A stretch of DNA of 64,000 nucleotides from Octopus sinensis (Eukaryota). Numbering within the stretch: position 1 is the stretch's first letter; every line of letters starts with the position of its first letter. The translations under genes and the position numbers were made by a program. The DNA is taken from NCBI RefSeq assembly GCF_006345805.1, contig NC_043003.1, forward strand, positions 558,001 to 622,000. The letters are read 5' to 3'. Below are positions 2,382-63,956 of this stretch, in pieces. Below the pieces are notes generated by a model. That model saw only the letters and a program-made list of their open reading frames with translations, was not told where the DNA came from and did no database searches.

Positions 2382-4278
2382 TCACGTAGTTCTAGATTTC
2401 CTAGTTTCTAAATTTCTGTCTCATTTTAAAAATGATAGTAATTTTTGTTCTAAACATTGAGACAGCTTCACAGGGAAATTAAAAGAAATAATTGTTGAAT
2501 TGGTTTAGGTTTTATTCCCAAAGACTATATTCAATTACTTCTTTAGTTCTACCAGTTCTAGTAACAGCAGAAGGGGTCTATTACTAGGGCTGTCTTAGCA
2601 GTATTATAAAGCCCCTGGGAAAATCAATATCTTGGGCCCTATATTTACTGACAGGAATACATAAATAGGAACTGGGCCCCCAGACCCATGAGGGCCCTTA
2701 AGATCTATGAGGCCCTCAGGCAAATCGGTACATCAGGCCTTATAGTATTTACTTATTGACTACAAACCACAACATACATAGATCAGAATTGAGGTCCCTA
2801 AACCCATGAGACCCTTGGGAAACTACTCAATGTGCCTAGATGACCCTGCTTATTGGTAGTGCTTAGGGTGACCCTCATGTTCTGGAAATATGCACAGATT
2901 TACTAGAACATTCTGACCACATGTCGATATGGATACTTAGAGGAGTTCATAGTCTTGCAAATGGTATGGTAGCCCCCACTAATGCTGGTGGTATGAACAA
3001 AGCACTTAGTACATTCAATAAAGTGGTTGGCATTAGGAAGGGCATCTAGCTGCCGAAACCATACCAAAGCAGATACTGAAGTACAATGGGTATAATATAT
3101 ATATATATTGTTGTATCTTGGGAGGATCATTTTGCCAATAAAAACACTTGCACTGATTATAATTTGCATCTTATTGTTAGTTAATTAAATAACCAATTAA
3201 ACCATAAGAGTGATCATTTGATCATTTGATCAATCAGTCAGTTTGTCAGTCCTTTCATCAGCTTTTGTAACCCCATCACTGGCTCACTGTCATCTGACCC
3301 AGCCTTGCCTGTTGCTATGGGTACATGCAAAGTGCACAATAAAACACAGGTTAAAAACATTTCTTTCTGGTAGGATCATTGACCTTCTTTTAAGAAACGT
3401 TATAGCTTCTACTTATGATTCCACTTGAATAATATAATATTGTAGTTTTTAAAAGCCATATGAAAGCATTGTTAACTGTGTTAGTTAATTGTTATTACTA
3501 GTACAATCTATTTGATAGGAGAGGTGGTGGTGGGGAAGTAATAGGGATAACAATGCTCTGGTGACAGCCGTAGTGATGATGATGATGATGGAGATGGTTT
3601 GTGATAAGGGTAGACATAAATGTTTAGAAGAACACCAGGGTAGGAATGTTTCTCATATTACATAGCTGGGGTATTTCTGGTCTGATATAGATAGCTTGCA
3701 ACTCCAAAGCTTCCCCCCCCACCTCTCTTTCTCTCTCACTTTCTTTCTCTCTTTTCTCCCTCTGTATTTTTGTTTCTCTCTAATGCTTTGGTTTCTCACA
3801 CAGCATCTGAAAGAAACCAAAATATATATATATATATAAATACAATTTACAGGAAATAAAAATAAAAGAGAAGAAAACTTATATAGTGATGGTGGCGATG
3901 GTAATTAAGAAGTGATGGTGGCGATGGTAATTAAGAAGGAAAAAGATGTTGGGCAGAGAATGGTTCTTCTGTTTCCCATTTGGCCTGGCTGGCTGAATTG
4001 TTGTTGTGTAGCACTGATAACTTCTCTCTGCTATCGGTTCTCTACTACTGCTTGTTGGTTGTAACTATTTGCTTGTTACCTCAACCGGTGTGCATTACAT
4101 GTGGAGTTACTACCTTTTCTGATGCCGAATGGGGTATCATGTCATGTGATCCTCTTACAGTAATACCTGCCACTGATACTTTTTTTTCAATATAGAACAA
4201 CATTTTGGTACGGTGCCAATCTATAATAATCTTGAAAGAAACATTCTGAGACCTAAGACCATACCATAGCCAAGCAGC

Positions 4279-4397: not shown

Positions 4398-6672
4398 GTA
4401 AGTATATCCTTTTGTTGGTTCAACTGCATAATTGTACCTTGGATCAATTTTTGTATGGATTTAACTGCATTGAGGTAAGTAAGGGATTGTTTAATTGCAT
4501 GGTGACATCCAAGCTTTTTTTTTTTTTGGCTTGTTTGAAGAGATAGCTTAAAGAATACCAACAACTGTAAATTGTTTTGGTGATATTCTCCTTATATACA
4601 ATTGTTAATTAAAAAGTTTGCACTTAAGTCAACTTTAGATTTTAATTAATTTGAATCTATTTATATTTATCAATATATTTTTACTTTTGCTCATTTGAAT
4701 ATTTAAATAAATGTTTTAATATGTGAACAAACATGCTAAATAAATAGTGTATATGTATGTATGTGTATCTATAAATGTGTGTGTGCGTGTGTGTGTAATA
4801 TATCATCATTTCTCTTTTTTATTTAGCATATTTAATATATTAAAACTATTAATTTTACAAATATGTTTTCTAATTTAAAAATTTAGAAACATATTTCAAA
4901 TTGATTTAAATTTTATTTTATAAAATAAAGACAACAACTTGGTCTTCAGAAAAAAAAAATTAATTAGTTTAGCTTTATTTTTGCAACATAAATAAATAAA
5001 TTGTATGTTTTCAAAACACCATTCTTTAAAGCTACATCTTTGACAACGAGGTATTAAAAAAAAAAAAGGCCACAAAATCATGTTTGTGTCTTTTTACAAT
5101 TCCACTTTGCTGATGACGTCTAAAATGACATTTGAATGTTATTTAGTTCTTTGTACATTTGTTTTTTGGATGTTTTTTTCGTGTATGATTTATTTGAAGA
5201 ACACTTGTTTGTGGTAAAGAAATTCAAAATCTTAGAGTTAAGACAAAAGCATTTACAATAAAAAGCTATGGGTTTGTCTCACCCTTCCATCTCTCTTGTG
5301 ACATTTTTCTTTTTCTACTTCATTATATTTTAAATATTTCATCTCAAATTTTAAGTTTTCATAAACGTAGATTATCTTCTCAATAACTTTGATTAGTCTG
5401 TCTACCTTTTGTTTTTCTGTCACAATGTCCCTTATTTTGGCATTAGTCAAAAACTGTCCAATTCTTTAACCAAAAACTGATATCATTTCCAATATTTAGT
5501 TATTTTTTATTTTCTAAAAACCTTGTTTTTATACATCTGTATATCTCAAGTCAATGGATATCCTCTTTATGGTTATTTGGCTTGCTAGAAATAGCAAACA
5601 ACATTTCTATCCAAATACTTGAATTACATCCTGCTGTCTAAAAAGAAAAAAAAAAGAAACAGAAATTAGTGTTGTCTGAGTTGTAGTCGATCTCCAGGAT
5701 GAAAAATTTTCAAAATGGTCACATCTGGAAAGCCTTTGAGTACAGCTCTGCTTTATCAAGGCTGACTACCTGAGACTAAAGGATAAAATGAACAGCCGCA
5801 TCCATGTTTTAACTAATGTGGCTGCCTCTATGCAAATGCTTGAGCTTCTAGAAATAGTAGCTAAATCCCACCATATTACACCTCTTACCATCTTAAGAAA
5901 GTTAGGACACATTCCATCATGCTATCCATTGTGCTAAATAGATGGAATTGTCATGTTTGGAATGTTTTTAATCATAATTGTGCTCAATGAAACCTCACTT
6001 GGGGTTAAATAACATTCAGACCCATATATGTCTTTTGATGGGATAATGGCATTGACCCTAAGAAAGGGTCAAACTGGGCAATTTCTGATCCCTCACAGGC
6101 ATTGCTGCAGCTTGTGGTTGAGCTTTTTATCATTCAGATTGCTCTGTCAAACGTGAAGCTTATTTCTTCAATGACACGATTGTATATATTTAGAATAACA
6201 GTGTAGGGTAAGTGTGAGAGGCTGGATCTAGCCAGTTTAAGCATAAAACAGGTAGAATTTTGGCCTGGGTATGACTAGTTTAAATGCTAAAGTGTAAAGG
6301 ACTTTGTGTCCAAATTAAGGTCAGTGTTACATATTGGTCACGATGTCATTGAAAATGGCACCAAGACCAATTTTCCCATTGTACTTATGCGAATATTTCA
6401 CTAATTTAATTAGAAAATCAGATTTTATCACTGACATTAAATTAAAAAGGGATCTTGTCACCCACCCACACACATTGTCTTGTAAACACTTTTGAGCTGT
6501 TCTCATGTTCTTTATCTCAATGAAAGTACTGAAGAGGTTGCGAGACCAAAACACTAAAGTCTAACCATAGAAATGAAATAGCGTAACACACACACGCATG
6601 CATGCGTGCACACACACACACACACTATACTTTTACATAAAGAATGGCAACAATGACTTCAAAGTTTCTGCC

Positions 6673-9642: not shown

Positions 9643-9649
9643 TTAACAG

Positions 9650-10048
9650 ATTAATGCAAGTTACAAACAACTGGTTACCAAGGAGACATCAAACGGTTGT
9701 GACCCCATTTCATATCATTATAACATTAAAAGAGACATCACATATGGCTGTAATAATGAGGACGATGGGGATGATGAGAAAGATGATGACGATGAAGAGG
9801 ATGATTGTGATAGCGACTTCGAAGAAGGACCTGAGAAATCTGACACATCATTGGAACTTCAAAACCACAATGGAAATTCCGATAATCCTTTTTGCTCTCC
9901 TGTAAAAGACACCTTTGAATCTTGTGCTGAAATTCGAGTAAGTAGTGCAGATCCTGGGCCACTTTCAGCAGCAATCCTAAATAATATGTACCCAAAGGTT
10001 GCCAACGATGATTATAATTATAAGTCTTCAAACCTAACTGAAACAAGG
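9650..10048 (+). CDS. TnI: Candidate TnI cassette exon A (133 aa, acidic: INASYKQLVTKETSNG...EDDGDDEKDDDDEEDDCDSDFEEGPEK...NLTETR)
   Basis: Acceptor tgttaacag|ATT after a U-rich tract. Open frame for 399 nt to donor AGG|gtgagc; a second in-frame donor CGA|gtaagt follows 9937. Phase 0-0. Confidence 0.68.
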
Positions 10049-11049
10049 GTGAGCAAATTAAAAAATATAAATTTCTTTTCGTTATTCCAACAATATTCGC
10101 CTTCATTCTAACATGAGTTCCAAATACTTAGATGTTTTTTTTATATATTTAGTTGAATGTATTTGTTAAACAGGTTCTGTTTTTATAGAGAAGGAATATT
10201 TATTTTGAAGTACTATTTACATTAGAGTCTCATGCCTTTCACTTCAGAACTTGGAGAAGCTGACATTATTTTTCATTCTTAAAGGGGTGCTAAAATAGTT
10301 TAGATTTCATCAATATGGAATCTGATGTTCTTCCAATAATTTCAATGATTTAGAATAAGATTTGATTACGAGGTTATGAAGATTCTCCTCAGTTTTGCCA
10401 AAGTAAACTAGACAAGATCCATACACACACACACACACACATACAATTTTAAATATAAGTAAAAAGGCCATCAAACCAATATGAAGTTGTGTAACTATTT
10501 TTTCCCATCAGATTATCAAATTCCATTTCTTTAATACCAATGGAAAGTAGAGAGTTAGAATGTTATCATGAAGAGCCTTGCATAGAATGAAATCCCACAT
10601 TTATACCCTAACCGAAACGTTATCACTCGTTCTTAATAGTTTGTCCATTTTGTACCAAATTCTTTCAGCCCACCAGTACGCTTATCTCTAAATAAACCTC
10701 TCTGTTTACTGGCATAATTTACAAACTCAGCCTCACCTTTTAATGTGTCTCTTCTTTTCTCTGCTTGAATATGTCAGAGTCATATTAAAAGCCATAAGAA
10801 AACATGAAGGAGACTCAACACTGAGTTGTGTTCAAGAGTTTCCAAAGATTCCATGAAACCCAGCAATGTCAAAACACATGATTAGTTTTATAATTTGGAA
10901 AAAGTAAATTAATTGCATATTATACGGAGTATTGTATCATCTCTAATTTGCTAGAAATGAAATGTGAGTGACTCAAAGGCTTAGAGTTTCGTGTCCAACT
11001 GGGATCATGTCAGAATCCTACCCAAGAAAAGATTGTGGATGTACACACA

Positions 11050-11430
11050 TTATTTTAAAATGTACATCAAGTTTTTCTACACATCTCCCTGTGATGCTCC
11101 TGGACACATCATCAGTGATGTTTCCTGAGGTTATCAGGTGTTTGGGTTCCTTCAACATCAGATGCCATCATCCAGGTAACCCAGCTGGGGGTTGACCAAG
11201 CCCCATCTTGTGTCCAGTTGACACCACCCCTGGTAGCATTGTTCATTCCAGGGCTTTTGCCTCCTGACCCACAGTTATCTTGAGGCAACCATTGTTGCCC
11301 CTACAGTCAACCAGATGACCTTCAGCCTATTGGCCCCTGTGATGCCAAGTATGTTGTAAGTTCTGCTGAAGGATTGGCCTACAACCCCTCTGCATCCTCT
11401 TGCGATGGCATCACTTGCCACTTCCTACTT
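11050..11430 (-). mobile_element. HERO-like (RLE-type) non-LTR retrotransposon 3' end relic
   Basis: Minus-strand GCRGVVGQSFSRTYNILGITGANRLKVI...ASR*LWVRRQKPW resembles the HERO C-terminus (EVGCRGF.GQS..LGI.G..ASRWLW.KR..W); 3' UTR contains CATCACTGATGATGTGTCC. Confidence 0.65.
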
Positions 11431-11524
11431 TCACATCATTCCACCATCTTGGCATGTTTCCACATTTTATTCTCTTTAGCCTCTATTAACTAAAATAAAT
11501 AAATAAAATGAGATAAAAATAAGA

Positions 11525-22978: not shown

Positions 22979-23026
22979 GAAGAAGAGGAACGCGAAGAGG
23001 CCGAAAGGAAAAAGAGACAGGAAGAG
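22979..23026 (+). CDS. TnI: Troponin I exon, EEEEREEAERKKRQEE
   Basis: ttgttgtgtag|GAA ... GAG|gtaaga, 48 nt, phase 0-0. E/R/K-rich helix typical of invertebrate TnI N-termini. Confidence 0.88.
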
Positions 23027-31177: not shown

Positions 31178-32587
31178 GAAATGCTAGCTGTGTTATTGTT
31201 ATTGAAATATTTGTTTTTGTCCTTTACAGTCATCAAGGAAACTAATGACCTTCGACCTATCTCTGTGGTTGTCATGTTTCTTGATATTCTCCAATTCTGT
31301 GGTGGTAGTCACAATGTTGATAAAAGTGGGTGGTCATTGAGAAGGACCTGTGCGTGTTTTATACTCAGTTGGTGGAGTTTGATATCCTACAGTTTAGTGC
31401 AGGGGTTAGGGTTAGGGAATTTTGGGTCTCCTTCATAAACATGTCTGTAACACAGCCACCAGAAAATAATACATATTAACGAAAAGAGAAGGGAGCCTCG
31501 ACATCATCCCTCAACCAACTGGAAAGAGCATCCAAATTGCCCTCAAATCACACCCTAACATCTTAAAATAATAAAAAAAGAAGATATTAGATAATTTAGT
31601 TGTAGAAATACCTGAACAGACAGGATGATCGTGGTTGGAATGTTTTGGTCATGGTTCTGCTGTATTTGCATTCATCTGAGTCAAAGAACATAGAAACTTC
31701 TTTGAATTATTCACTTCTTCTTCTCTTCTTCTTCATTCTTCTTCTTCCTTTCTTAGGTTTCTACCTTGTACCCTCTTCCTTTCCATCTTTAGCTCTCTCT
31801 CTCTCTCTCTCTCTCTCTCCCCCTCACTATATATATTTATAGTCTTTCATCTCTAATCCCATTTAAATTCTAAATCTTAAATGGTAATAGTTGTAACCGT
31901 TGTTAATTTAAATTCCTTCTTGTTCAATCATTTTTCTTATTTGTTCTGGAATATTCTCTTGTTGTTTGCCTTGTTATTTAATTATTTATCAAGATATTTG
32001 TTGTCACATGAATATATTTTTTGTAGATTTACTTTTATAGTCAATTTCTTTGTATTTTTTTTTCTTTTGCATTTTCACACTGATATTAATAAACAATTTA
32101 CAAGAAAACAAGCAATTATTGGTTTCTTACGCCTGCAAAAATTTTAATGATTGTTTTAAAATGAAGGGTGAACAATAAGTTGTAGTCTTCCTGTCTTTCT
32201 TAGGGATTATTGTCAGTGAAGAGAGACTTGTTAAAACTTATTCCTAATATCAGTTCACAAAAGTGACGCCAACACTGAGCAGGCATCTTCATTGAAGCTT
32301 CAACATTTACCTACAAGCCAAATGACGGGGAGTTCTACCTGCGTCCATCAAAGTTTATTATTTGAATCTGACATTTTCACATAAAAAGCAACCATGCTGG
32401 CACCATGTAAGAAGCACAAAGTACACTCTGTAATGTAGTTGGTATTAGGAAGGGTATCCAGGGTATTAGGAAGGGTATCCAGCCGTAGAAACCAAACCAA
32501 AACAGACAATGGAACCAGGTGTGGCCCCTGGGCCGCAGGTTCCTGCCAAGCCATCCAACCCATGCCAGCATGGAAAATGGATGTTAA

Positions 32588-32620
<33 letters not shown>

Positions 32621-34579
32621 CCTTTAGTTAGACTCTAAATAAAAAATATGGTTGGCAATCCTGATGCCAAGTCATCTCAGTATTATTCCAATCCACCACT
32701 TAGTATTTTTCATGAAATAACGATAATGCTGGATAATTCGAACCTCAAAAGTAACAACTCTGATTCTGTTACTAACTCACTGGGGAGACATTTTTGCAAG
32801 GAAGAACTGCGTTAATCCATTTTGTGTTTCTAATCAGTTACATTGTTTCCTGGTCAAGTAAGCAGCATTAAGCCAAAAATAACTGGCTGTAAAAAGGACA
32901 GAACCACTCCTGCTGGAAGTGTATAAAGTTGGTGAATTTCCCAGTTTTGGAAATAAAGTATAAGAAGAAATATATTTGTGCCAAAGTGTGGACTTTGAAA
33001 TATTTTGGTTGAACCCAAGTCCTTCTTCTTTTAGAGAATGTGTTGAGGTGGCTGGAGGAAAGTTGATGGTGAATTCCTTGAATATTTTATAATCAGAGGT
33101 ATTCGTTGACAGATAACTATCCCTAATTAAGTTTAGGGAAAGGAAAATGGAATGGTGATATAACTCAACCAAGAGTAGTCTCAGCTCTGATGGAGTTCCC
33201 ATTGGTCATCTCTCAGTATATTGGCTAAAATGGAATGAAAAGTAATCTTACCAGTTGCAAACTCAGAGTAGTAAAGTTGCTAAATTAGATGTAGTAAAGC
33301 CTTCAACCCACTGCTGTCTCGGCCATCTCAATTGCACTTCAAGCTAATAATACTTTATTTTGTATTAAAACAAAAAAATAGCATTTCATAATATTTATTA
33401 ACTTGGTGAAGCAATTCTCTCCTTTCTGCTTTGACCTTTTTTTAAAAACATTTTGAATTGTGAGTAATGATCTTCCAGTGTGTCTTAGTAGATAGAACTG
33501 CATGTTTTTTTCTTTTATTTATCCAACGATTGTGAGTCGATGCGTGTCAGGTGTCTGTCTGTGCGTGTGGCAATGAGTTTAGTGGCTTCAATTGCATTTA
33601 TCGAATGATAGAATGACTTAGAGAACGTTGCATTTACTTATTTGTTGATTTAGAGCTAACTTTGTAATAGAAGAAGAATTGTTCAGCTTTAGGTTTCTCT
33701 TAACATCTCTCCCTCTCTCTTTCTCTCTCTTTTTCTCACTGATTTCAAACAACTAATTTAGTGTAGTTCAAATTTTGTCTCTAATTGTCTTTATTCTCTT
33801 TTCCTTTATTCCTTTTTCATACTCTTTTACCGTTTTTGTTGCCTTTTCTTTTTTTTCTTTTTCTTTTTTTTTGCTGTTATCTGGTTTTCTTGGTGTGCCT
33901 TTTCAGAAATGTCTTCTTAACATTGCATCGAAATGGTATATACAAAGTGTGACTAGAACTGTATTTTATTTTCCTAAGTCGTTAAGATTGAAGCAGAAAG
34001 GCACTGCTCAGACCCTGTGGTAGCCCTCTCAGATCGGAAGATGAGGTGAGACTGATGTATTTAATGCCAAACTTTGGGAGGCAAAGGTTATTGTGTTGTG
34101 AGAATACTTGGAAACTGAAGAGAGTTCATTCAGAGCAGCAGTGACTAAAATTGAAGTACTGTATATAATGGTTCATCAGGATATACTGTATATAATGGTT
34201 CATCAGGATATGTATATATATGGTAGGGAGATGAGAATTAAAGAAGTGGGTGCAACATGGTAGATTTGAAGGGAGTTGGAGATGCAAGACCAAAACCCAT
34301 CTTATTAACTTTAATTGATGGTAGCCTGATGATTGCAAGAACTCTAGAGACTATCTTCACTAAACTCACCAAGCTTTCTTAATGATTCCTCATATGATAG
34401 AATATCACAGCAGATCAATTATGATGTTCTGTCTGAAGAGGTTAAGTAACTTTACTAAACAAGTATCAATTGATTTTTATTACCATATTTGATGGCATAT
34501 AAGACACATTTTCTTCAAAAAAGGAAAAAAAAATGTCTCAAAAATTCACCCTGGGTCCTATATGAAAAATTAAGCTTAT

Positions 34580-35025: not shown

Positions 35026-38000
35026 CCTTAAAGTCAGGCCTATGTTACATACGTTAACCCTCTAAAAAGTTTGTTTCCTGCTTGTGTGTTACTGGAATTG
35101 GGATGCATCTAATATGCTTATGTGTCTTTTATCCCATCAGATGTGGTAATTAAAATATTGCTAATGAGAAATTCTTTGATCTGCATCGAATCATTAATAA
35201 ATAAAATAGACATCAGTAAAGCTGATTATCAAATTACTTAATTTCTCCATCTGCTCACATTTTGTGTAGTTGGGAGTAAAACCAGAAGCTGACCATTCTA
35301 TATTGACTCAATATAGAATGTGTGTTTATTAGTCCCACCAACAGGTTTAAGGGAAATTTTAAAGGATTTTGTAATTTAGATCTTAACTTCAAAACTACAA
35401 TATTGAATTAACTAAGCCATACTAATTAATTAGTTAAATTAAATATTACAAACTGACCAACATAGTTAAGTATTTATTTGTTATTTGGCCAGTGCTTACA
35501 TTATAATATTTTTGTTCATAAACCATAGAATTCATTTAAATCTCACTGTTTAGGAAATTCCTCAAAGATTATTGATGGCTGTACGGCATCTATAATCTGT
35601 CTCTCCACAATATCATTCCTTTCTGTTATTCACCTGCAAATGTCTTGTATTTAAGCTATTCACACTCTTTGTATTGCTACAGTAATAAAGAACTACTTTC
35701 TAATAATAGCTCAGAGTCTTTAGACATTCTTGTAAACTTTCCATTTACTCTTTGAGAAGTCTCTTCATTTTATACTATTACGCTTTGACTACTTTCTCTA
35801 TACATTGCAAAGCACTGATTTCAATTATGTAAATTCATACCGTCTGTTTTGAAGTTCTTTTCCAAGAAATCACCTTCCAATAGTTATTCTTCTATAACTC
35901 TCTGCCTCACTAGCTTGTTTCACACAAGCTTGCCATGACACGTAATTGCTTTGATATTTATCTTCTGAGAAATAACTGGCATCTCACATATATCAACTGT
36001 TTTCCTCGTTTCTTTGTGTGAGAGCAAATTTCTACAAATTCATAGATACTATCTAGTAGTTTTGGTTCCGATAGGAACCCAGATATTCGTTTTGCCTTCC
36101 TTATATGAAGTATTAATGCCCCACCCACTCATAATCCTGTTGTTTGAAAAGGAAAAGAGAAAGAATCTTTTTAACTCACATAATATTGCTATTTTCAATC
36201 TATTTTATCTTACACACATCAACTTTTAACTTGAGATTCCACTCCATATTTTCTCCATTTTCTTCTCACCAGACATATTCCAGTTTAGCCTATCTTTCCT
36301 CCCATCTTTCTTTAAGAGAATGTGTGCTCCTATCCAGTAATTGAAGACATATCCTATATATATATATATATATATATATCTTCTTCTTTTATTTTTATGA
36401 GCTTTTGCTTAATTCATAAATAAGAATTATTTTATGATTCTGGGATATTAAGCAATCTCAGTCGACCATGTGTTATACTGGTCTTATTTGTATGGAAGTT
36501 ATAATATTTAAAAATATGTTAAAATACTAGAAGATTAATTCGTTAAAAATAAATGAAGACTAGAAATATGTCTTGTTCTGTTAGTAAAAGCCAAAGTGTG
36601 ATGTTAGATTAGTGAAGATAAAGAAATGGTTAATTCATGAATGCATAATAAGGTGAGATGCAATGATGTGTACGATCTTCTCATTGATGTCATTATCTTC
36701 CCTTTTGCAAAAGTAAAGATATGAATATCGATGAGGAAGAACTGATTGTACAGTTTCTTGTCATCTTTATCAGTAACTGAATTGAATGCATCAATGGAAA
36801 TACTTTTCTAACTGCTTTGTAAGCTGTGGCCAGAACAGGGTCATTACTAGGAGAGAACTACTGAAAGGAGCAGATAAAAGTGAATGAAATTTTAAATTAA
36901 AGTGTAGGCTAAATGTAGACCCATGTCTGCTCTGGCTCATCGTCAAGGGCAACTGATATCAAGATTGATAATAATACAACCTTTTTGGGAGTGACTTATT
37001 GTCAGAGACTACATGAAATATCATTTAGTCAAACTTTATAAGATGTTGACTAATAGAAATAATCAACTGTGGGCACTTAGATGAACGATTGAACCACATG
37101 GTGTTGAAGATCTATAGAGCTGTATGTGTGTGTGTGGTTTTCTATGTGTGTGTGTGTTAGTTACAGAAACAATCTTCTAAAACTGGGAGAAAGGAGGAAG
37201 AAGCCATGGACCAGCAATCTGGTCCAGATGCTGGTTTCAGATTCTACTCCACTGAACTTTGACAAATGTCTTCTACTGTAGCCCTGGATTGACCAATGCC
37301 TTGAGTGAATTTGGCAGATGGAAACTGTGTGGCAGTCCCTGGTGTGTGTGTCTGTGTGTATCTTTGTGTTTGTCTCCTCCACTGCTTGAATATTGGTTTT
37401 GGTTTGTGTGCCTGTAACTTAGCAGATGGCAAAAAAAGACTGATAGAATTAGTACCAAGCTTAAAAAATAAGTACTGGAGATTGATTTGTTCAACTAAAC
37501 CTTTGAGGCAGTGCCACAGCATGGCCACAGTTTAATGACTGAAACATGGTAAAGTCTTGATAACTCCATTAGTTGATTAAAAAATTACTTATAAATTTGC
37601 CATATTCTAAATATCTAGAAATCTGACAGATAATTTTCCCTGGCAGTGCTCCAGCATGGCCACAGCCTTAGGACTGAAATGTATAAAAGAATAAAAGCAT
37701 AAATGCATTTGAAGCATTTTCATATCTTTATTTGCTGAAAAGTGTGCTGGAAAAAAATGGGGAGTCTGCAGTCTAAATGGTAAGGATCCTTGAAAGGTTG
37801 AGACTAAAAGCAACGAGAAAGATTAAGCGCATTTGGGGATTAACTAGCATTTGGGATTAACTAAGAGAGAATAAAATGATGTCCTGACCATTGCTTTGTA
37901 TAAACAATAGAAACTCGTATCATGAAAGTAAGCTCCACCCTGGAGCATAAACTTTCAAATGCTCTGGGATCCGTTTTGATATGCCAAGCATCTTTTTCAC

Positions 38001-40636: not shown

Positions 40637-40732
40637 GCTGCCCGGCGAAGGCACGAGGAGGAAGAGAAGAAAAAGAAGGGCAAAAGAAAGGGTTTGGGTG
40701 GCCTGTCTCCAGAGAAGAAGAAACTACTCAAG
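40637..40732 (+). CDS. TnI: Troponin I exon, AARRRHEEEEKKKKGKRKGLGGLSPEKKKLLK
   Basis: ctctctgcccag|GCT ... AAG|gtactg, 96 nt, phase 0-0. KRKGLGGLSPEKKK is recognisable molluscan TnI sequence. Confidence 0.95.
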
Positions 40733-52267: not shown

Positions 52268-52292
52268 AGTGTTTGTCTTCTGTTTGTAATAG

Positions 52293-52449
52293 CCTTCTCC
52301 TGAAGTCTGTGCTGCGGCAGAGAAAATCACAAAATTGACTGATGTCAGTCAGGTAGACTTAGATGACACTGATGAGGAAGCAACGAAGAAACTGATACTT
52401 TCACAACGTATAGTTCTTTTACCTGACAAACTTGAAGAGCTAAGTAAAG
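52293..52449 (+). CDS. TnI: Candidate mutually exclusive TnI exon (PSPEVCAAAEKITKLTDVSQVDLDDTDEEATKKLILSQRIVLLPDKLEELSK + 1 nt)
   Basis: tcttctgtttgtaatag|CCT ... AAAG|gtactg, 157 nt, open, phase 0-1 like exon 56940-57060. Its C-terminal half aligns with FICERVEPLITEGLNE. Confidence 0.75.
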
Positions 52450-54978
52450 GTACTGTGATCTCAAAACTGAATACCAAATTCTATTGGTTCTGATCGACAT
52501 GTATGATTCCATAAATGTATAAATAAAATTAATTTTTATGAAGGTAATTCTAAATCGAATGAGTTACAACAAACTATTGACGAACCTCAAATTTCTTAAT
52601 GCAAATAGTTTTATTATTGATATTTCGCACCATCATAATCTTCATCATTATCATCATTATTATTGTTGTTGTGGGAGGCACTTGAATATGCAGGAAACTT
52701 CTCAGTAAGACTGAGTTTGTAATCCAAATTCTATACACAATGTCAACTACTTTAGCTCCATTACTAATAATCTTAGAAATTTAATAATTATCAGAATTTC
52801 CTATTCTACTCAACCATAATATATCTCAAAATATTGAAAGATAACAGTTTAAGTTTATTTAAGAAACTATCACCAACATCGTTATTGTTATTGTTATTAT
52901 TATTATGGTGGTGGTGAGCTGGAAGAATTGTTAGTGTGTTGGGACAGAATGCTTAGTGGCATTTCTACACAAAGTTGAATTTGACTTCCATTATTTCAGG
53001 GTCAATAAGTACAAGTTGAGCACTGAGGTCAATGTGAATAAGTACAAAGTGAGGTCAATGACTTGCCTCCTTCTACTAAAATTACTTGCTTTGTGCCAAA
53101 ATTTGAAACCACTGTCATTATCATTATTATTATTAGTAGTAGTAGTAGTTGTAGTAGTAATAAGTAGTATTAGTATTATAAACAGAGCAACTATGGAAGC
53201 ATTGGAAAACAAGAAGAACTGATGTTTAAAGGCAGAAAAGCCAGCCAAATAAGACATTTGCATTGAGATAATCGTTCCAGTCCCTCATTATAAAACCCCT
53301 TTGTTGTCCTTATAAGCAAAGCTTTACTCACCTCTGATTGCTTAAGCTTCTCATACCTGTTCAATTATTCGAGATCTCATCACCCTTACCATCCTCATCG
53401 TTTTTGTAACTGAACAAGGTGATGTCTAAGATGTTCTTGGTCAACTGGATCCATGACTAATTTTTGTTTTGTGGTTTCAATTACTTAACCTCACTTGCAT
53501 AACATACCCTGCAAAGAGTTATGGATACAACAAATTACCAATTCTCTCAAAATTCTCCTACAAGAAGTCATTCGATTTGTTGTTCTTGTGTTGATGGTGG
53601 TAGAAATTTCCAACATGGTTTCAATATCGAATGAAAACCATTTTTAGATAGTAAAAACTTGTATCAAACCCATCATCGTATGATGATTATAACAACAACA
53701 ATGATAATAATAATAATAATAATAATTTCAAATTCTGGTGCAAGTCCAGCAGTTTTAGGGGAGGGAGCAAGTTGATTATATCCACCCTGAGAGGGTGAAA
53801 GGCAATGTTGACTGCGGTGGAATTTGAACTCAGAATGTAAAGATCCAAAGTAAATGCTGCTGAATGTTTTGTCCAACATGCTAACAATTCTGCCACCTCA
53901 TTGCCTTAATAATAGTAATAATAATAATAATAATAATATTTGAGGAGGCTATTTGATGTTATGTATTGAACCAATTTCTGTGCATTAGTGGCATTTATTT
54001 TATTGACTCCTCCAAAGAATTCCTAATTATGCTCAACTAAAGGTGGTGCTCCAGCATAGCCACAGTCACATGACTGAAACATGCAAAAGAGTAATATTGG
54101 TGCATATTTTGTCACCTTTGGTAAGCGAAAAGCAAAGTTGACTGCACCTAGGACTGAACTCCGAAACAGGATTGCACCAAAACTGGGGTGGGTCGGGTGG
54201 AAGGGTAATTATAATTGGCTCCCTTTTTTGAATTGTAACAACTTCACCACTTTTGTTTACCCTCTTGCTACATTTAATTATTCTGATGACAATGATGATG
54301 ATGATGGCGGTACCATTATTATTGTAAAAACTTAAAACAAACCTCTGGCATTTAACAAAAATTTTTTTTTTATTCTTGTATGTGGTCCCATTTTGACCCC
54401 TCTGGTGCTCCTTCACCAATATTCTTATATTTTATGTGGCCATGGTATGCAGAATGTGTCAAAAAATCATATCAACAGATTCCTTATTTTCTGCATGCTG
54501 CATGTCACAAAGAGCAACTTTACCTCTTGTTTACTTTTATTGATCTTTTTTAAATTTTTAATCAAACATTTCATAAATTCATTGATTCTTAATATTTTTT
54601 ATAACAATAATGATAATAACAATTATTATTATTATTACTATTGTTGTTGTTGTTAATAATATTTGATATATATATTGATGTATTTTTGTATATATTTTCC
54701 AGCATTAATTCTCATAAAAAAAAACCATAACACCCTTCCAACTGGGCAAGTTCCTAGTTAGTAATATAGATTTGATATTGTTTTCAGTATTGTATCATTG
54801 AATATTTTTGTATTATGCAATGTAATCTCACATATATAACATAAATATTAAATATATAATATAAGCGTGTTTATATATGCATATATGTATATATACACAC
54901 ATGCATAAATATAAATATATATATGCATATTTATACACATTGTTTATATTATATATATATTTGTATTATATTTATGTG

Positions 54979-55026
<48 letters not shown>

Positions 55027-55717
55027 GTTTAATTGCACATTTTTGTTTTCAATATTTAATGTTTAGCTTGTGGTATTGGTTTTTCCATTAAAATCATTTT
55101 CTGCTCAGATTAAACAAGTCTCACCACTCCTCTTCTATGCCATTAAATCTAATACAAACCATTAGCTTTATTGTTTGTGATGGTGGTACACTTAGATATT
55201 GCTATTTGTTACTTATTATAATATTTGTTTAATTTACTGTAAACAATGAAAATCAGTGGCTAATGAGTTTTCAAAGTGCTATTAATTAGAAGCCTTCTTC
55301 ATAACCATTGCAGCCTTGCCACTCTCTGTTAGTAAGAGACCTCTTCTCTAATGATGAATTCCAATGACTGTAAGTTAGAGAGATAAGCTCTTGTCCACTT
55401 CTCTTTGCAAGCTCTTGGAGAGATCATTGAATACATAATTTGATTGTGTTTGCGTGAGAAAGACTTTTATTTGTTTCTAACACACACACATTTGATAGGC
55501 TTCTTTCAGTTTCCATCTACCAAATCCACTCACAAGGCTTTGGTTGGCTCAAGGCTGCTGTTGAAGATACTTGCCCAAGGTACCACACAGTAGGATTGAA
55601 CAGGGAACCATGTTGTTGAGAAACAAACTTCTTACCACAGCCACATCTACACCTATATAGCCAATGTCCAAGCCTTTAATTTACCCATTATTAAAGGTTC
55701 TTATTAAACTAATGTAT

Positions 55718-55950
55718 TTAAACCTTCAACATTCAGATCACTCCTCTGCCAAATGTAAGGCTTATTTATTCCCATTGTTTTGACAGAAATAATGCATTAT
55801 CTCATAGTTTTGCGATTTCAATGATGTGAATGTTTATTTCTAGAATGACATTGTAGGGTAGGTGTGAGAGGCTGGATCTGGCCAGTTTGAACATAAAACA
55901 GGTAGAATATTTTGGGCTGGATATGGCTGGTTTAAATGCTGAAGGGTTAA
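55718..55950 (+). mobile_element. Copy of the second piggyBac-type MITE family
   Basis: Same core as 27453-27680; ends tttaaatgctgaagggTTAA. Confidence 0.75.
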
Positions 55951-56939
55951 AAACCTTTCAAAGAAATAATTGGGATATTTTAAAACATTGGTTTCTAATG
56001 TAAGGCTAGTTCATGTGAATGCCACATGGAAGGCCCACTACGAGGGTCAATTATGGAGCATTGTGAGTGACTGCATATTGAGAGAGTTTCAGGAGATTAA
56101 GGGGTGGGGGTCGTTTGAACGAGCGTATCTGTGTAGTCAGCAGTAACAACAAGGTCTTTATTGTATAGAAGAAGAAAGGGTGTTGGAGGTTTTAGCAAAT
56201 GGTGAGGTTCACAAAGCTTGATTAGATATTGGAGACATAACTGCTGATGCCAAAACAGGTCGCTGCAGTGAGGGAGATAATCCGGAGGGTGTCATTGGTC
56301 ACCTGTTTAGTTACCTTTGATGTGTAAAAGATGAAGCATCCTTTTTCTGTGAAGGCTAATCAACATAAAACTAGCAAAAATGTGACCAGTTGAATTAAGT
56401 ACCAGGATGGGTGTTAGCTGCGTTACCTTGCATAGGTAGTAATCAGATTGTCCAATAAGAGGTGAGACTGTGACACAGGGAAAATATTAAGCTTAACAAA
56501 GAAAGAGTTAATATTTCAATTCCCCTATTAATAATGTATATCTTATATTTTTTATAGCTCTAAATGTGTGGCCATTGTTTTGAAATTTTAGTTATTTCTT
56601 ATAATTTAAAGACTTCATGTTATAAAAATGAATTGCAGTAAATGTTAGGCTGAAACTTGGTTTTGTATCTAAGATGGAACCAATTCCTTCGCATCATTGA
56701 TCCTTTTTCCCTAGGGAAGTCATTAATGAACATCACAATCTCCTCTGCAAATTTCAGGTTTCATGTTATCATTTCAGATTTCTATTATTATCAGAAATCG
56801 TGTTATTAATGTTTACTTGGTTTTTTTTCTTCTCCAAATATTGCTGTTCTTTGTTTGATCAATGTTTGACCTTTGTTACAAACTCATGATTTTCTTTCTG
56901 TCATCATATGAAGATCGTTGTTGCTATGTCTGTTTGTAG

Positions 56940-57060
56940 AAACTTATTATGCAAAAGGCCGCTGAAGACTTGAAAAATGAAGCTAAACGGAAAGCTGAAG
57001 AAAAAGAACGCTTCATTTGCGAGAGGGTTGAGCCATTGATTACCGAGGGTCTAAATGAAG
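56940..57060 (+). CDS. TnI: Troponin I exon, KLIMQKAAEDLKNEAKRKAEEKERFICERVEPLITEGLNE + 1 nt (TnC-anchoring helix region)
   Basis: tctgtttgtag|AAA ... GAAG|gtaggc, 121 nt, phase 0-1. KLIMQKAAEDLKNEAK matches molluscan TnI as I recall it. Confidence 0.96.
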
Positions 57061-63855: not shown

Positions 63856-63956
63856 CACAGTTGCAAGATCTGGTAAAGAAACTCCATGCGAAAACAGCAG
63901 AGCTTGAAGAAGAAGTCTATGACTGTGAATTTAAAATCAGAAGACAAGAATTTGAG
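63856..63956 (+). CDS. TnI: Troponin I exon, (A)QLQDLVKKLHAKTAELEEEVYDCEFKIRRQEFE (TnT-binding coiled coil); gene continues beyond the window
   Basis: ctttttacag|CA CAG ... GAG|gtactc, 101 nt, phase 1-0. LEEEVYD.E.KIR.Q.FE is the troponin-family heptad region. Confidence 0.96.

Follow-up and report, generated by a model that had tools for sequence, protein, structure and literature searches.

An alternative exon of the troponin I gene, common to octopus and bivalves, predicted to replace most of the troponin C-anchoring helix

The 64,000-nucleotide stretch of Octopus sinensis DNA described here (the window, positions 558001-622000 of contig C7, NC_043003.1, from an assembly of 2.72 Gb) contains on its + strand a troponin I (TnI) gene. 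Between a common upstream exon (e1) and a common downstream exon (e3) lie two further exons, A and B, which are alternatives for a single slot in the protein (Table 1); this pair, and exon A in particular, is the subject of the present analysis. The protein XP_036360332.1 (915 aa, Octopus sinensis, isoform X15) matched the window exon by exon and carries exon B. The open reading frame (ORF) of exon B scored 30.3 bits against the Pfam family Troponin, PF00992 (cut-off 26.2). The spliced B isoform aligned to the cardiac TnI chains of the PDB with an E value of 3.6e-21 over residues 39-148, from the start of helix H1 through the inhibitory region, and the spliced A isoform aligned to PDB TnI with an E value of 3.7e-13. 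The inhibitory region is present as INDLTIKVNDTRGKF and VKPVLKKVSKTEAK at about 3249-3295 and 4461-4503 of the adjoining DNA (L003), where it aligns to cardiac DLRGKFKRPTLRRV. Both this region and the helix that forms the coiled coil with troponin T (TnT) are encoded by common exons, outside the A/B slot.

Table 1. Position of troponin I exons in the octopus window and in the bivalve and bivalve-like sequences (exon boundaries are marked by a slash)
Sequence	Feature	Position	Strand	Remark
Octopus, window	Exon of the giant N-terminal extension, X15 residues ~235-368	9647..10048	+	Ends approximate; context only
Octopus, window	Large exon of the giant N-terminal extension, ~365 codons	16809..17903	+	From tblastn, ends approximate; context only, outside the exon switch
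Octopus, window	Upstream TnI exon EEEEREEAERKKRQEE, 48 nt	22979..23026	+	Common to short squid-type and giant isoforms
Octopus, window	Common upstream exon (e1) AARRRHEEEEKKKKGKRKGLGGLSPEKKKLLK, 96 nt, phase 0 end ...GLSPEKKKLLK	40637..40732	+	Predicted donor for A and B
Octopus, window	Exon A PSPEVCAAAEKITKLTDVSQVDLDDTDEEATKKLILSQRIVLLPDKLEELSK, 157 nt, phase 0-1	52293..52449	+	5' part acidic with Pro; 3' part is the linker motif LSQRIxxLPD
Octopus, window	Exon B KLIMQKAAEDLKNEAKRKAEEKERFICERVEPLITEGLNE, canonical, 121 nt, phase 0-1	56940..57060	+	Aligns to cardiac TnI 51-90; present in RefSeq X15
Octopus, window	Common downstream exon (e3) (ca)QLQDLVKKLHAKTAELEEEVYDCEFKIRRQEFE	63856..63956	+	Start of the TnT-pairing H2 helix; acceptor for A and B
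Octopus, L003	Remaining TnI exons INDLTIKVNDTRGKF, VKPVLKKVSKTEAK, LAKLERKKAENFRP...			Just 3' of the window
L013	e1 MAAEEEKKKKKGKRKGLGGLSPEKKKLLK; e3 (A)ELKKLCKQLH...			Bivalve-like contig
L013	Exon A cag/DVEYDTEEEEEKWRVVSERLMPLPDDFDFLST+g/gt, 97 nt	~10007-10103
L013	Exon B QIIMQKAAEEMKKEALAKAEAKEKYISKYLEPLTIDGLGE+g, 121 nt as in octopus	11180-11300		1.1 kb beyond A
L014	Exon A, 106 nt	~10007-10112		Bivalve-like contig
L014	Exon B	11399-11519
L025	Exon A	locus start		JGI contig, bivalve-like; A cut off by the locus end
L025	Exon B	1307
Pecten maximus, L028 (LR736847.1)	e1	31522-31596
Pecten maximus, L028	Exon A, 103 nt	34004-34106
Pecten maximus, L028	Exon B	36352-36472

Exon A is bounded by the acceptor ...tcttctgtttgtaatag/CC and the donor AAG/gtactg, and exon B by the acceptor ...tgtctgtttgtag/AA and the donor AAG/gtaggc, both acceptors being pyrimidine-rich. 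The G+C content amounts to 40.8% in exon A and 40.5% in exon B, with 29-35% in the flanks, and exon A occurs once in the 2.7-Gb genome. The coordinates, lengths and phase given for the two exons by the initial annotation of this DNA were found to be correct, both lengths being 1 mod 3. It had also claimed that both exons continue into AQLQDLVKKLH and that exactly one of them must be used, and these points were borne out by splicing in silico. Each exon joins 63856 to give A-QLQDLVKKLH, and the combinations of the upstream exon with A and e3, or with B and e3, remained open. Inclusion of both exons (...LSK-ETYYAKGR-stop) or of neither (...LLK-HSCKIW-stop) led to a premature stop because A and B are each 1 mod 3. 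At the least, then, exclusivity is enforced by the reading frame, as the minimum mechanism. Among the transcripts and isoforms, octopus X15 (the only octopus isoform retrieved) contains B, the bivalve mRNA encoding the protein P0090 contains A only, and P0023 and many others contain B only. As to the upstream exon that feeds 52293, the homologous GLSPEKKK.LK exon is joined to A in P0090 and in isoform X2 of Dreissena, so that the octopus junction 40732>52293 is predicted by homology.

Two further features of the splice sites were noted. The acceptor regions of A and B (52275-52292 and 56925-56939) have the string tctgtttgta(at)ag in common, which is too short to call and does not occur at the bivalve acceptors. 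An in-frame internal acceptor within exon A (cag before GTA GAC TTA) is permitted by the frame; it has no pyrimidine tract and was therefore not adopted.

The search in other molluscs returned the same A-then-B pair in the scallop Pecten maximus, in three bivalve-like contigs and in Dreissena, and the order e1-A-B-e3 is constant across the octopus and bivalve loci. Among the homologues of the canonical TnI isoform, P0090 was distinguished by the absence of the KLIMQKAAEDL helix, its sequence being ...GLSPDKKKKLK-DSPVEYDTEEEEEKWRVVSERLTPLPDDFDFLST-AELKKLCKQLH... A Logan contig of 920 nt (L012) encodes this protein in full, as an ORF of 163 aa that contains A and lacks B; L012 has no introns and therefore represents an mRNA. 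A search with the odd segment of P0090 located a gene call on a 268-kb ENA contig, and L013 is the genomic locus there. All complete A exons read from DNA, together with the 36-residue A of Dreissena, are 1 mod 3. The Pecten A exon, atag/YDTSDENDDDYDAEKRRVLSQRIQPLPDLTCMSK+g/gt, was the single ORF picked by the A-exon profile between e1 and B (E 2.4e-7, next 3.1). It was present in none of the 12 RefSeq isoforms read, all of which carry B, and the scallop A-isoform peptide YDAEKRRVLSQRIQPLPDLTCMSK is a candidate marker for its expression. Two RefSeq isoforms of a 'caldesmon-like' protein of Dreissena polymorpha, X1 (917 aa, B-type, QIIMQKAAEDLRKEALAKAQEKEKFINERVGPFNVDGLGE) and X2 (913 aa, A-type, DFIGEITYTAEELEEKFQELSYRVLPLPDEIDLLTP), differ in exactly the A/B slot and are otherwise identical around it.

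The comparison of L012 with L013 showed 13.5 synonymous and 1.5 non-synonymous differences in the A exon, that is, proportions of synonymous (pS) and non-synonymous (pN) differences of 0.69 and 0.02 and a ratio of 0.03. The pN/pS ratio of the other exons was 0.09, A being at least equally constrained. Between L013 and L014 the aligned blocks are nearly all exons, exon A included, and the introns are mostly unalignable. Bivalve A is a transcribed coding exon under purifying selection, and the low pN/pS together with the mRNA L012 identifies it as functional. The initial annotation had taken A and B for a real mutually exclusive coding pair, with a dead duplicate as the condition that would overturn this view. 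The retention of A in the corresponding place of the scallop and clam genomes, its presence in a bivalve mRNA and the purifying selection found there support the former.

The octopus exon was related to those of bivalves by its alignment score, which was 58 against the A exon of P0090 (composition-preserving shuffles 22.6±4.2, z ~8.5) and 60 against that of Pecten (shuffles 22.6±4.4, z ~8.5). Six-frame translation of 144 kb of octopus DNA gave 4,816 pieces, which were scanned with a hidden Markov model (HMM) built exclusively from four bivalve A exons. The 52293 ORF was the best match (E 0.002, next 1.3) and spanned the profile end to end, the exon B ORF taking rank 4. Position, order and phase are common to octopus and bivalve A, and the ending ...SK/g is common to octopus and Pecten. 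In the aligned A exons an acidic run is followed by K and then by h-h-S-x-R-h-x-x-L-P-D. The octopus exon is the most divergent of them and has about 16 extra, lineage-specific N-terminal residues (PSPEVCAAAEKITKLT). Judged from the shuffle scores, the HMM scan and the common position, order, phase and ending, octopus A is the same exon as bivalve A.

That exon A might instead be a chance open frame with splice-like edges, its similarity to bivalves being an artefact of composition, can hardly be credited. The likelihood of a 52-codon ORF in AT-rich DNA is estimated at a few percent, and the direct similarity of A to B is not significant, which would both suit such an origin. The shuffles, which preserve composition, nevertheless gave z ~8.5 with each of two independent A exons from bivalves, the blind HMM scan recovered exactly the 52293 ORF, and the flanking exons, order, phase and ...SK/g ending are common with bivalves. 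The shuffle scores and the HMM scan effectively refute this explanation.

The split between cephalopods and bivalves is estimated to lie hundreds of millions of years in the past, and the A/B pair is at least as old. Homology further argues that selection has acted on octopus A for almost the entire period since, because the match survives this ancient split with the frame open and the splice sites intact. The A exon was seen in Octopus, in scallop (Pteriomorphia), in Dreissena, and in three contigs and one transcript with Dreissena-like B exons. No A-type was present among the arthropod, nematode and flatworm TnI proteins matched. A scan of JGI metagenomes with squid TnI, swamped by a low-complexity peptide, returned transcripts of mixed invertebrates that were all B-type, and it yielded L025.

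A relationship between the two exons themselves is less direct. The initial annotation had aligned the 3' halves of octopus A and B, and this alignment did not rise above chance (local score 26 with shuffles at 22.1±4.1, p 0.18; p 0.13 when the halves were compared and 0.07 in the global alignment). Octopus B matched bivalve A with p 4e-4 and Pecten A with p 8e-4, over EEKxRxxxxRxxPL. An hhalign comparison of the A profile with the B profile gave P 8.6e-4 over 16 co-linear columns, confined to the 3' halves, with a probability of 24%. Homology of the 3' halves is thus supported only indirectly, via the bivalve A exons and the profiles. The claim that the 5' halves differ completely was a fair one, with the caveat of a low-posterior co-linear fit of A to cardiac H1 that is considered below.

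The protein segment exchanged can be placed on known structures. PDB entry 3TZ1 contains as its chain B a 'Troponin I' peptide of 24 residues, GLSPEKKKMLKKLIMQKAAEDLAN, identical to octopus in 22 of 24 positions. In the paper on this entry the peptide is described as bound to the C-lobe of troponin C (TnC) (Kato et al., Biol Chem 394:55). Residue 11 of the peptide is the last one before the exon boundary, and the remaining 13 come from exon B, in keeping with the binding of the N-terminal TnI helix to the TnC C-lobe stated in the initial annotation. The 24-mer defines the contribution of exon B in this way; the A isoform has residues 1-11 only, followed in octopus by Pro-Ser-Pro and an acidic run. 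In the alignment with human cardiac TnI, exon B corresponds to T51-F90, which is most of H1 plus the H1-H2 linker. By the helix limits reportedly given by Takeda et al. in 2003, exon B comprises H1 from 51 to 79 and the linker, and the N-terminal two-thirds of H1 are said to fill the cleft of the TnC C-lobe.

The 3' part of exon A resembles the TnI linker (VLSQRIQPLPD in Pecten beside cardiac ALSTRCQPLEL, with the motif S-x-R-x-x-x-L-P-D). Its 5' part is of a different nature: octopus A begins with Pro-Ser-Pro and has an acidic stretch in place of the helix core. The net charge of the 5' part lies between -5 and -7 in each of the seven A exons (window 52293-52449, L013, L014, L025, L028, P0090 and P0125) and between 0 and +1 in each of the six B exons. 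The length of A varies between 32 and 52 aa, and that of B is always 40 aa. In single-sequence AlphaFold2 models, the B-type clam protein P0023 formed one continuous helix at 20-62, and the A-type P0090 a coil at 22-36 followed by a short helix at 37-51; H2 was intact in both.

Within the acidic run of every A exon there is a Ser or Thr in a CK2-like context (T-D-E-E, T-E-E-E, T-A-E-E, S-D-E-N), which may be a phosphorylation target, and x-S-P, which could be a proline-directed site, opens the A exons of octopus and P0090. Upstream of the slot, the GLSPEKKKLLK exon (40637-40732 in octopus) is skipped in some squid transcripts (P0011, P0288), which read …KKRQEE/KLIMQKA…, and in the giant Pecten isoforms the GLSPEKKK.LK exon is replaced by another, …QKLIET/KLIMQKA… With this skipping or replacement and the A/B swap, both halves of the TnC anchor are alternatively spliced.

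From these data it is considered probable that exon A is a functional octopus TnI exon, exclusive with B, and that the A isoform would lack most of the TnC anchor. Exon B would provide the H1 core, an amphipathic helix lying in the TnC C-lobe, and the H1-H2 linker; exon A would keep the linker LSQRIxxLPD and replace the helix core by a variable-length, strongly acidic stretch. The retention of the TnT coiled coil by the A isoform, as initially claimed, agrees with the location of the TnT helix in common exons. Because this coiled coil of H2 with TnT and the inhibitory region KVNDTRGKFVKPVLKKV would both be kept, the A isoform should be able to sit on the thin filament, minus most of its structural anchor for TnC. 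The use of exon A in octopus is predicted from its sequence, and the loss or weakening of TnC coupling is suggested by sequence, charge and the two low-confidence single-chain models.

TnI normally requires the H1 helix for holding TnC, and in molluscs the C-lobe of TnC contains the sole Ca2+ site. Since the lobe bound by H1 holds this sole site, the A isoform should change or abolish Ca2+ control of the thin filament. The likeliest outcome would be a TnI whose inhibition is controlled hardly or not at all by TnC and Ca2+, in particular muscles or cells. Scallop TnC has one Ca2+-binding domain (PMC12040844). Activation by molluscan troponin has been attributed to the structural TnC-binding site and the TnI inhibitory region (PMC5963113, citing Tanaka et al. 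2005).

Several observations weigh against this interpretation. Upstream of A, residues 1-11 of the TnC-binding peptide (GLSPEKKKLLK) are still encoded. The AlphaFold2 models are single-sequence and single-chain, of low to moderate confidence (mean pLDDT 62 and 71). HMMER lays octopus A co-linearly on cardiac H1, with low posterior probability, and because of this alignment a weakened or altered TnC contact of A is possible. The similarity between A and B is weak. In one TnI gene each of Patella caerulea, Lottia gigantea and the leech Helobdella robusta, no A-type exon was found in the intron between e1 and B, so the exon is not universal. The octopus and bivalve A exons could in principle have arisen by convergence, which appears unlikely because position, phase and motif are common to both. 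Among 5.8 billion proteins, searched with the exon A region of a 196-aa A isoform, no match was returned, a result that is uninformative as it covered proteins of 108-343 aa, excluding the giants, and Octopus records appear to be thin. Five guessed octopus isoforms (giant with A, short with A, short with B, and two skipping the upstream exon) had no exact record, which is equally uninformative since the canonical form had none either.

Exon A might instead be an old exon, functional in bivalves, that persists in octopus as an unused, still-open relic, with which the protein search and the isoform look-ups, for all that they are uninformative, would agree. The sole octopus RefSeq isoform retrieved, X15, carries B, and the marked divergence of octopus A with its 16-residue N-terminal addition points the same way. 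Such a relic is nonetheless improbable: its 52 codons are open, its AG and GT are intact with a good polypyrimidine tract, and its G+C content is exon-like. The motif and the ...LSK/g ending were kept after an ancient split, and neutral sequence would have decayed unless the inactivation was very recent.

The co-linear fit on cardiac H1, low as its confidence is, also favours another explanation, according to which the switch is real and exon A rewires the coupling. GLSPEKKKLLK, the few hydrophobic or aromatic residues ahead of the acidic cluster and a short helix would then dock another TnC isoform or another partner, or the acidic CK2-like cluster would be a regulated module. A short amphipathic helix can be recognized in A (EKWRVVSERL in bivalves, KKLILSQRIVLL in octopus; predicted at 37-51 in P0090), and the T/S followed by acidic residues is conserved in all A exons. 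The strong purifying selection on the whole exon, including the acidic part, implies that this part does something specific. TnC itself is very acidic, however, and a segment with a net charge of -5 to -7 would be a poor ligand for it; the variation of A between 32 and 52 aa, with B constant at 40 aa, is hard to reconcile with a helix that fits exactly into a groove. Rewiring is therefore regarded as the less likely outcome, and loss of most of the anchor remains the preferred interpretation.

Either-or exons inside a single TnI gene are already known from Drosophila wupA. In that gene residue A116 is presumably located in the conserved KKAAEEL helix (H1), and the exon 6 set, which we take to consist of four homologous full-length versions, would correspond to the linker and the TnT-pairing H2. 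The fly segment would thus differ from the mollusc pair, which covers the H1 core and linker (cardiac 51-90). In addition, one member of the mollusc pair, A, is acidic, variable in length and without a recognizable H1 core. The fly exons 6a-6d are mutually exclusive and follow the constitutive exon 5, which holds A116, and the fly isoforms are thought to be functionally specialised (PMC8011728). Another likeness is to the 52K and 19K TnI of the Akazara scallop, which differ by the presence of the long N-terminal extension, and to the giant isoforms recorded in RefSeq for Pecten, Mytilus, Crassostrea, Dreissena and Octopus, all of which belong to the same family and have many N-terminal variants produced by splicing or promoters. 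Those of them that are readable keep the KLIMQKAAEDL core (B-type), and the A swap is a separate internal event. We know of no natural vertebrate, fly or worm TnI isoform that is without H1 and retains the TnT coiled coil and the inhibitory region. The literature searches returned no description of an A-type exon, which is present as an unremarked Gnomon isoform in Dreissena; relative to the literature found, an A-type replacement of the H1 core appears to be new.

Other observations concern the remainder of the gene. The giant X15 isoform has an N-terminal extension of about 730 residues, including the single exon of ~365 codons, and about 234 of its codons lie upstream of the window. It is named 'uncharacterized protein DDB_G0287625 isoform X15' in RefSeq, and comparable giant TnI proteins are misnamed in Pecten, Mytilus and Crassostrea ('trichohyalin-like') and in Dreissena ('caldesmon-like'). 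The last exon seen (L003 ~6130-6145; C7:628130-628145) can either read through to ...GAAG-stop (ggt tag) or splice at G/gttagt to give ...GAAEE as in X15, which suggests alternative C-termini like those of the Pecten isoforms. In L014 the e1 exon (…KKKKKGKRKGLGGLSPEKKKKLK) is tandemly doubled at 6084-6170 and 6314-6394, about 230 bp apart, the second copy reading GLGRLSP. The sole other Pfam Troponin match of the genome search lies at a distance of about 109 Mb on this chromosome (L001, C7:109729796-109730005); it was rejected as a second TnI, as it reads like troponin T (EEEKRAILAQRIQPLAIDGLNAEKLREKAKELHDHL).

The RefSeq products called 'caldesmon-like', 'trichohyalin-like' and 'uncharacterized protein DDB_G0287625' prove to be giant isoforms of troponin I. 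The A-type exon is of interest to muscle biologists, and it is less extraordinary than the initial annotation held it to be. It is tempting to speculate, as a tentative and rather doubtful extension of the data, that molluscs have kept since before the cephalopod-bivalve split a dedicated TnC-independent TnI, assembled with TnT, inhibitory and unswitchable by the single-site TnC. If this were true, control of the thin filaments in particular muscles (catch, smooth or tonic fibres) or in cells other than muscle would fall to the myosin-linked system. It would also give a handle on the puzzle of troponin components in mollusc muscles that behave as myosin-regulated. The scallop offers a direct test case, since its troponin biochemistry and 3TZ1 exist and its A exon is genomic and in no RefSeq isoform read. 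Some mollusc muscle filaments may carry a TnI that is poorly coupled to calcium or uncoupled from it.

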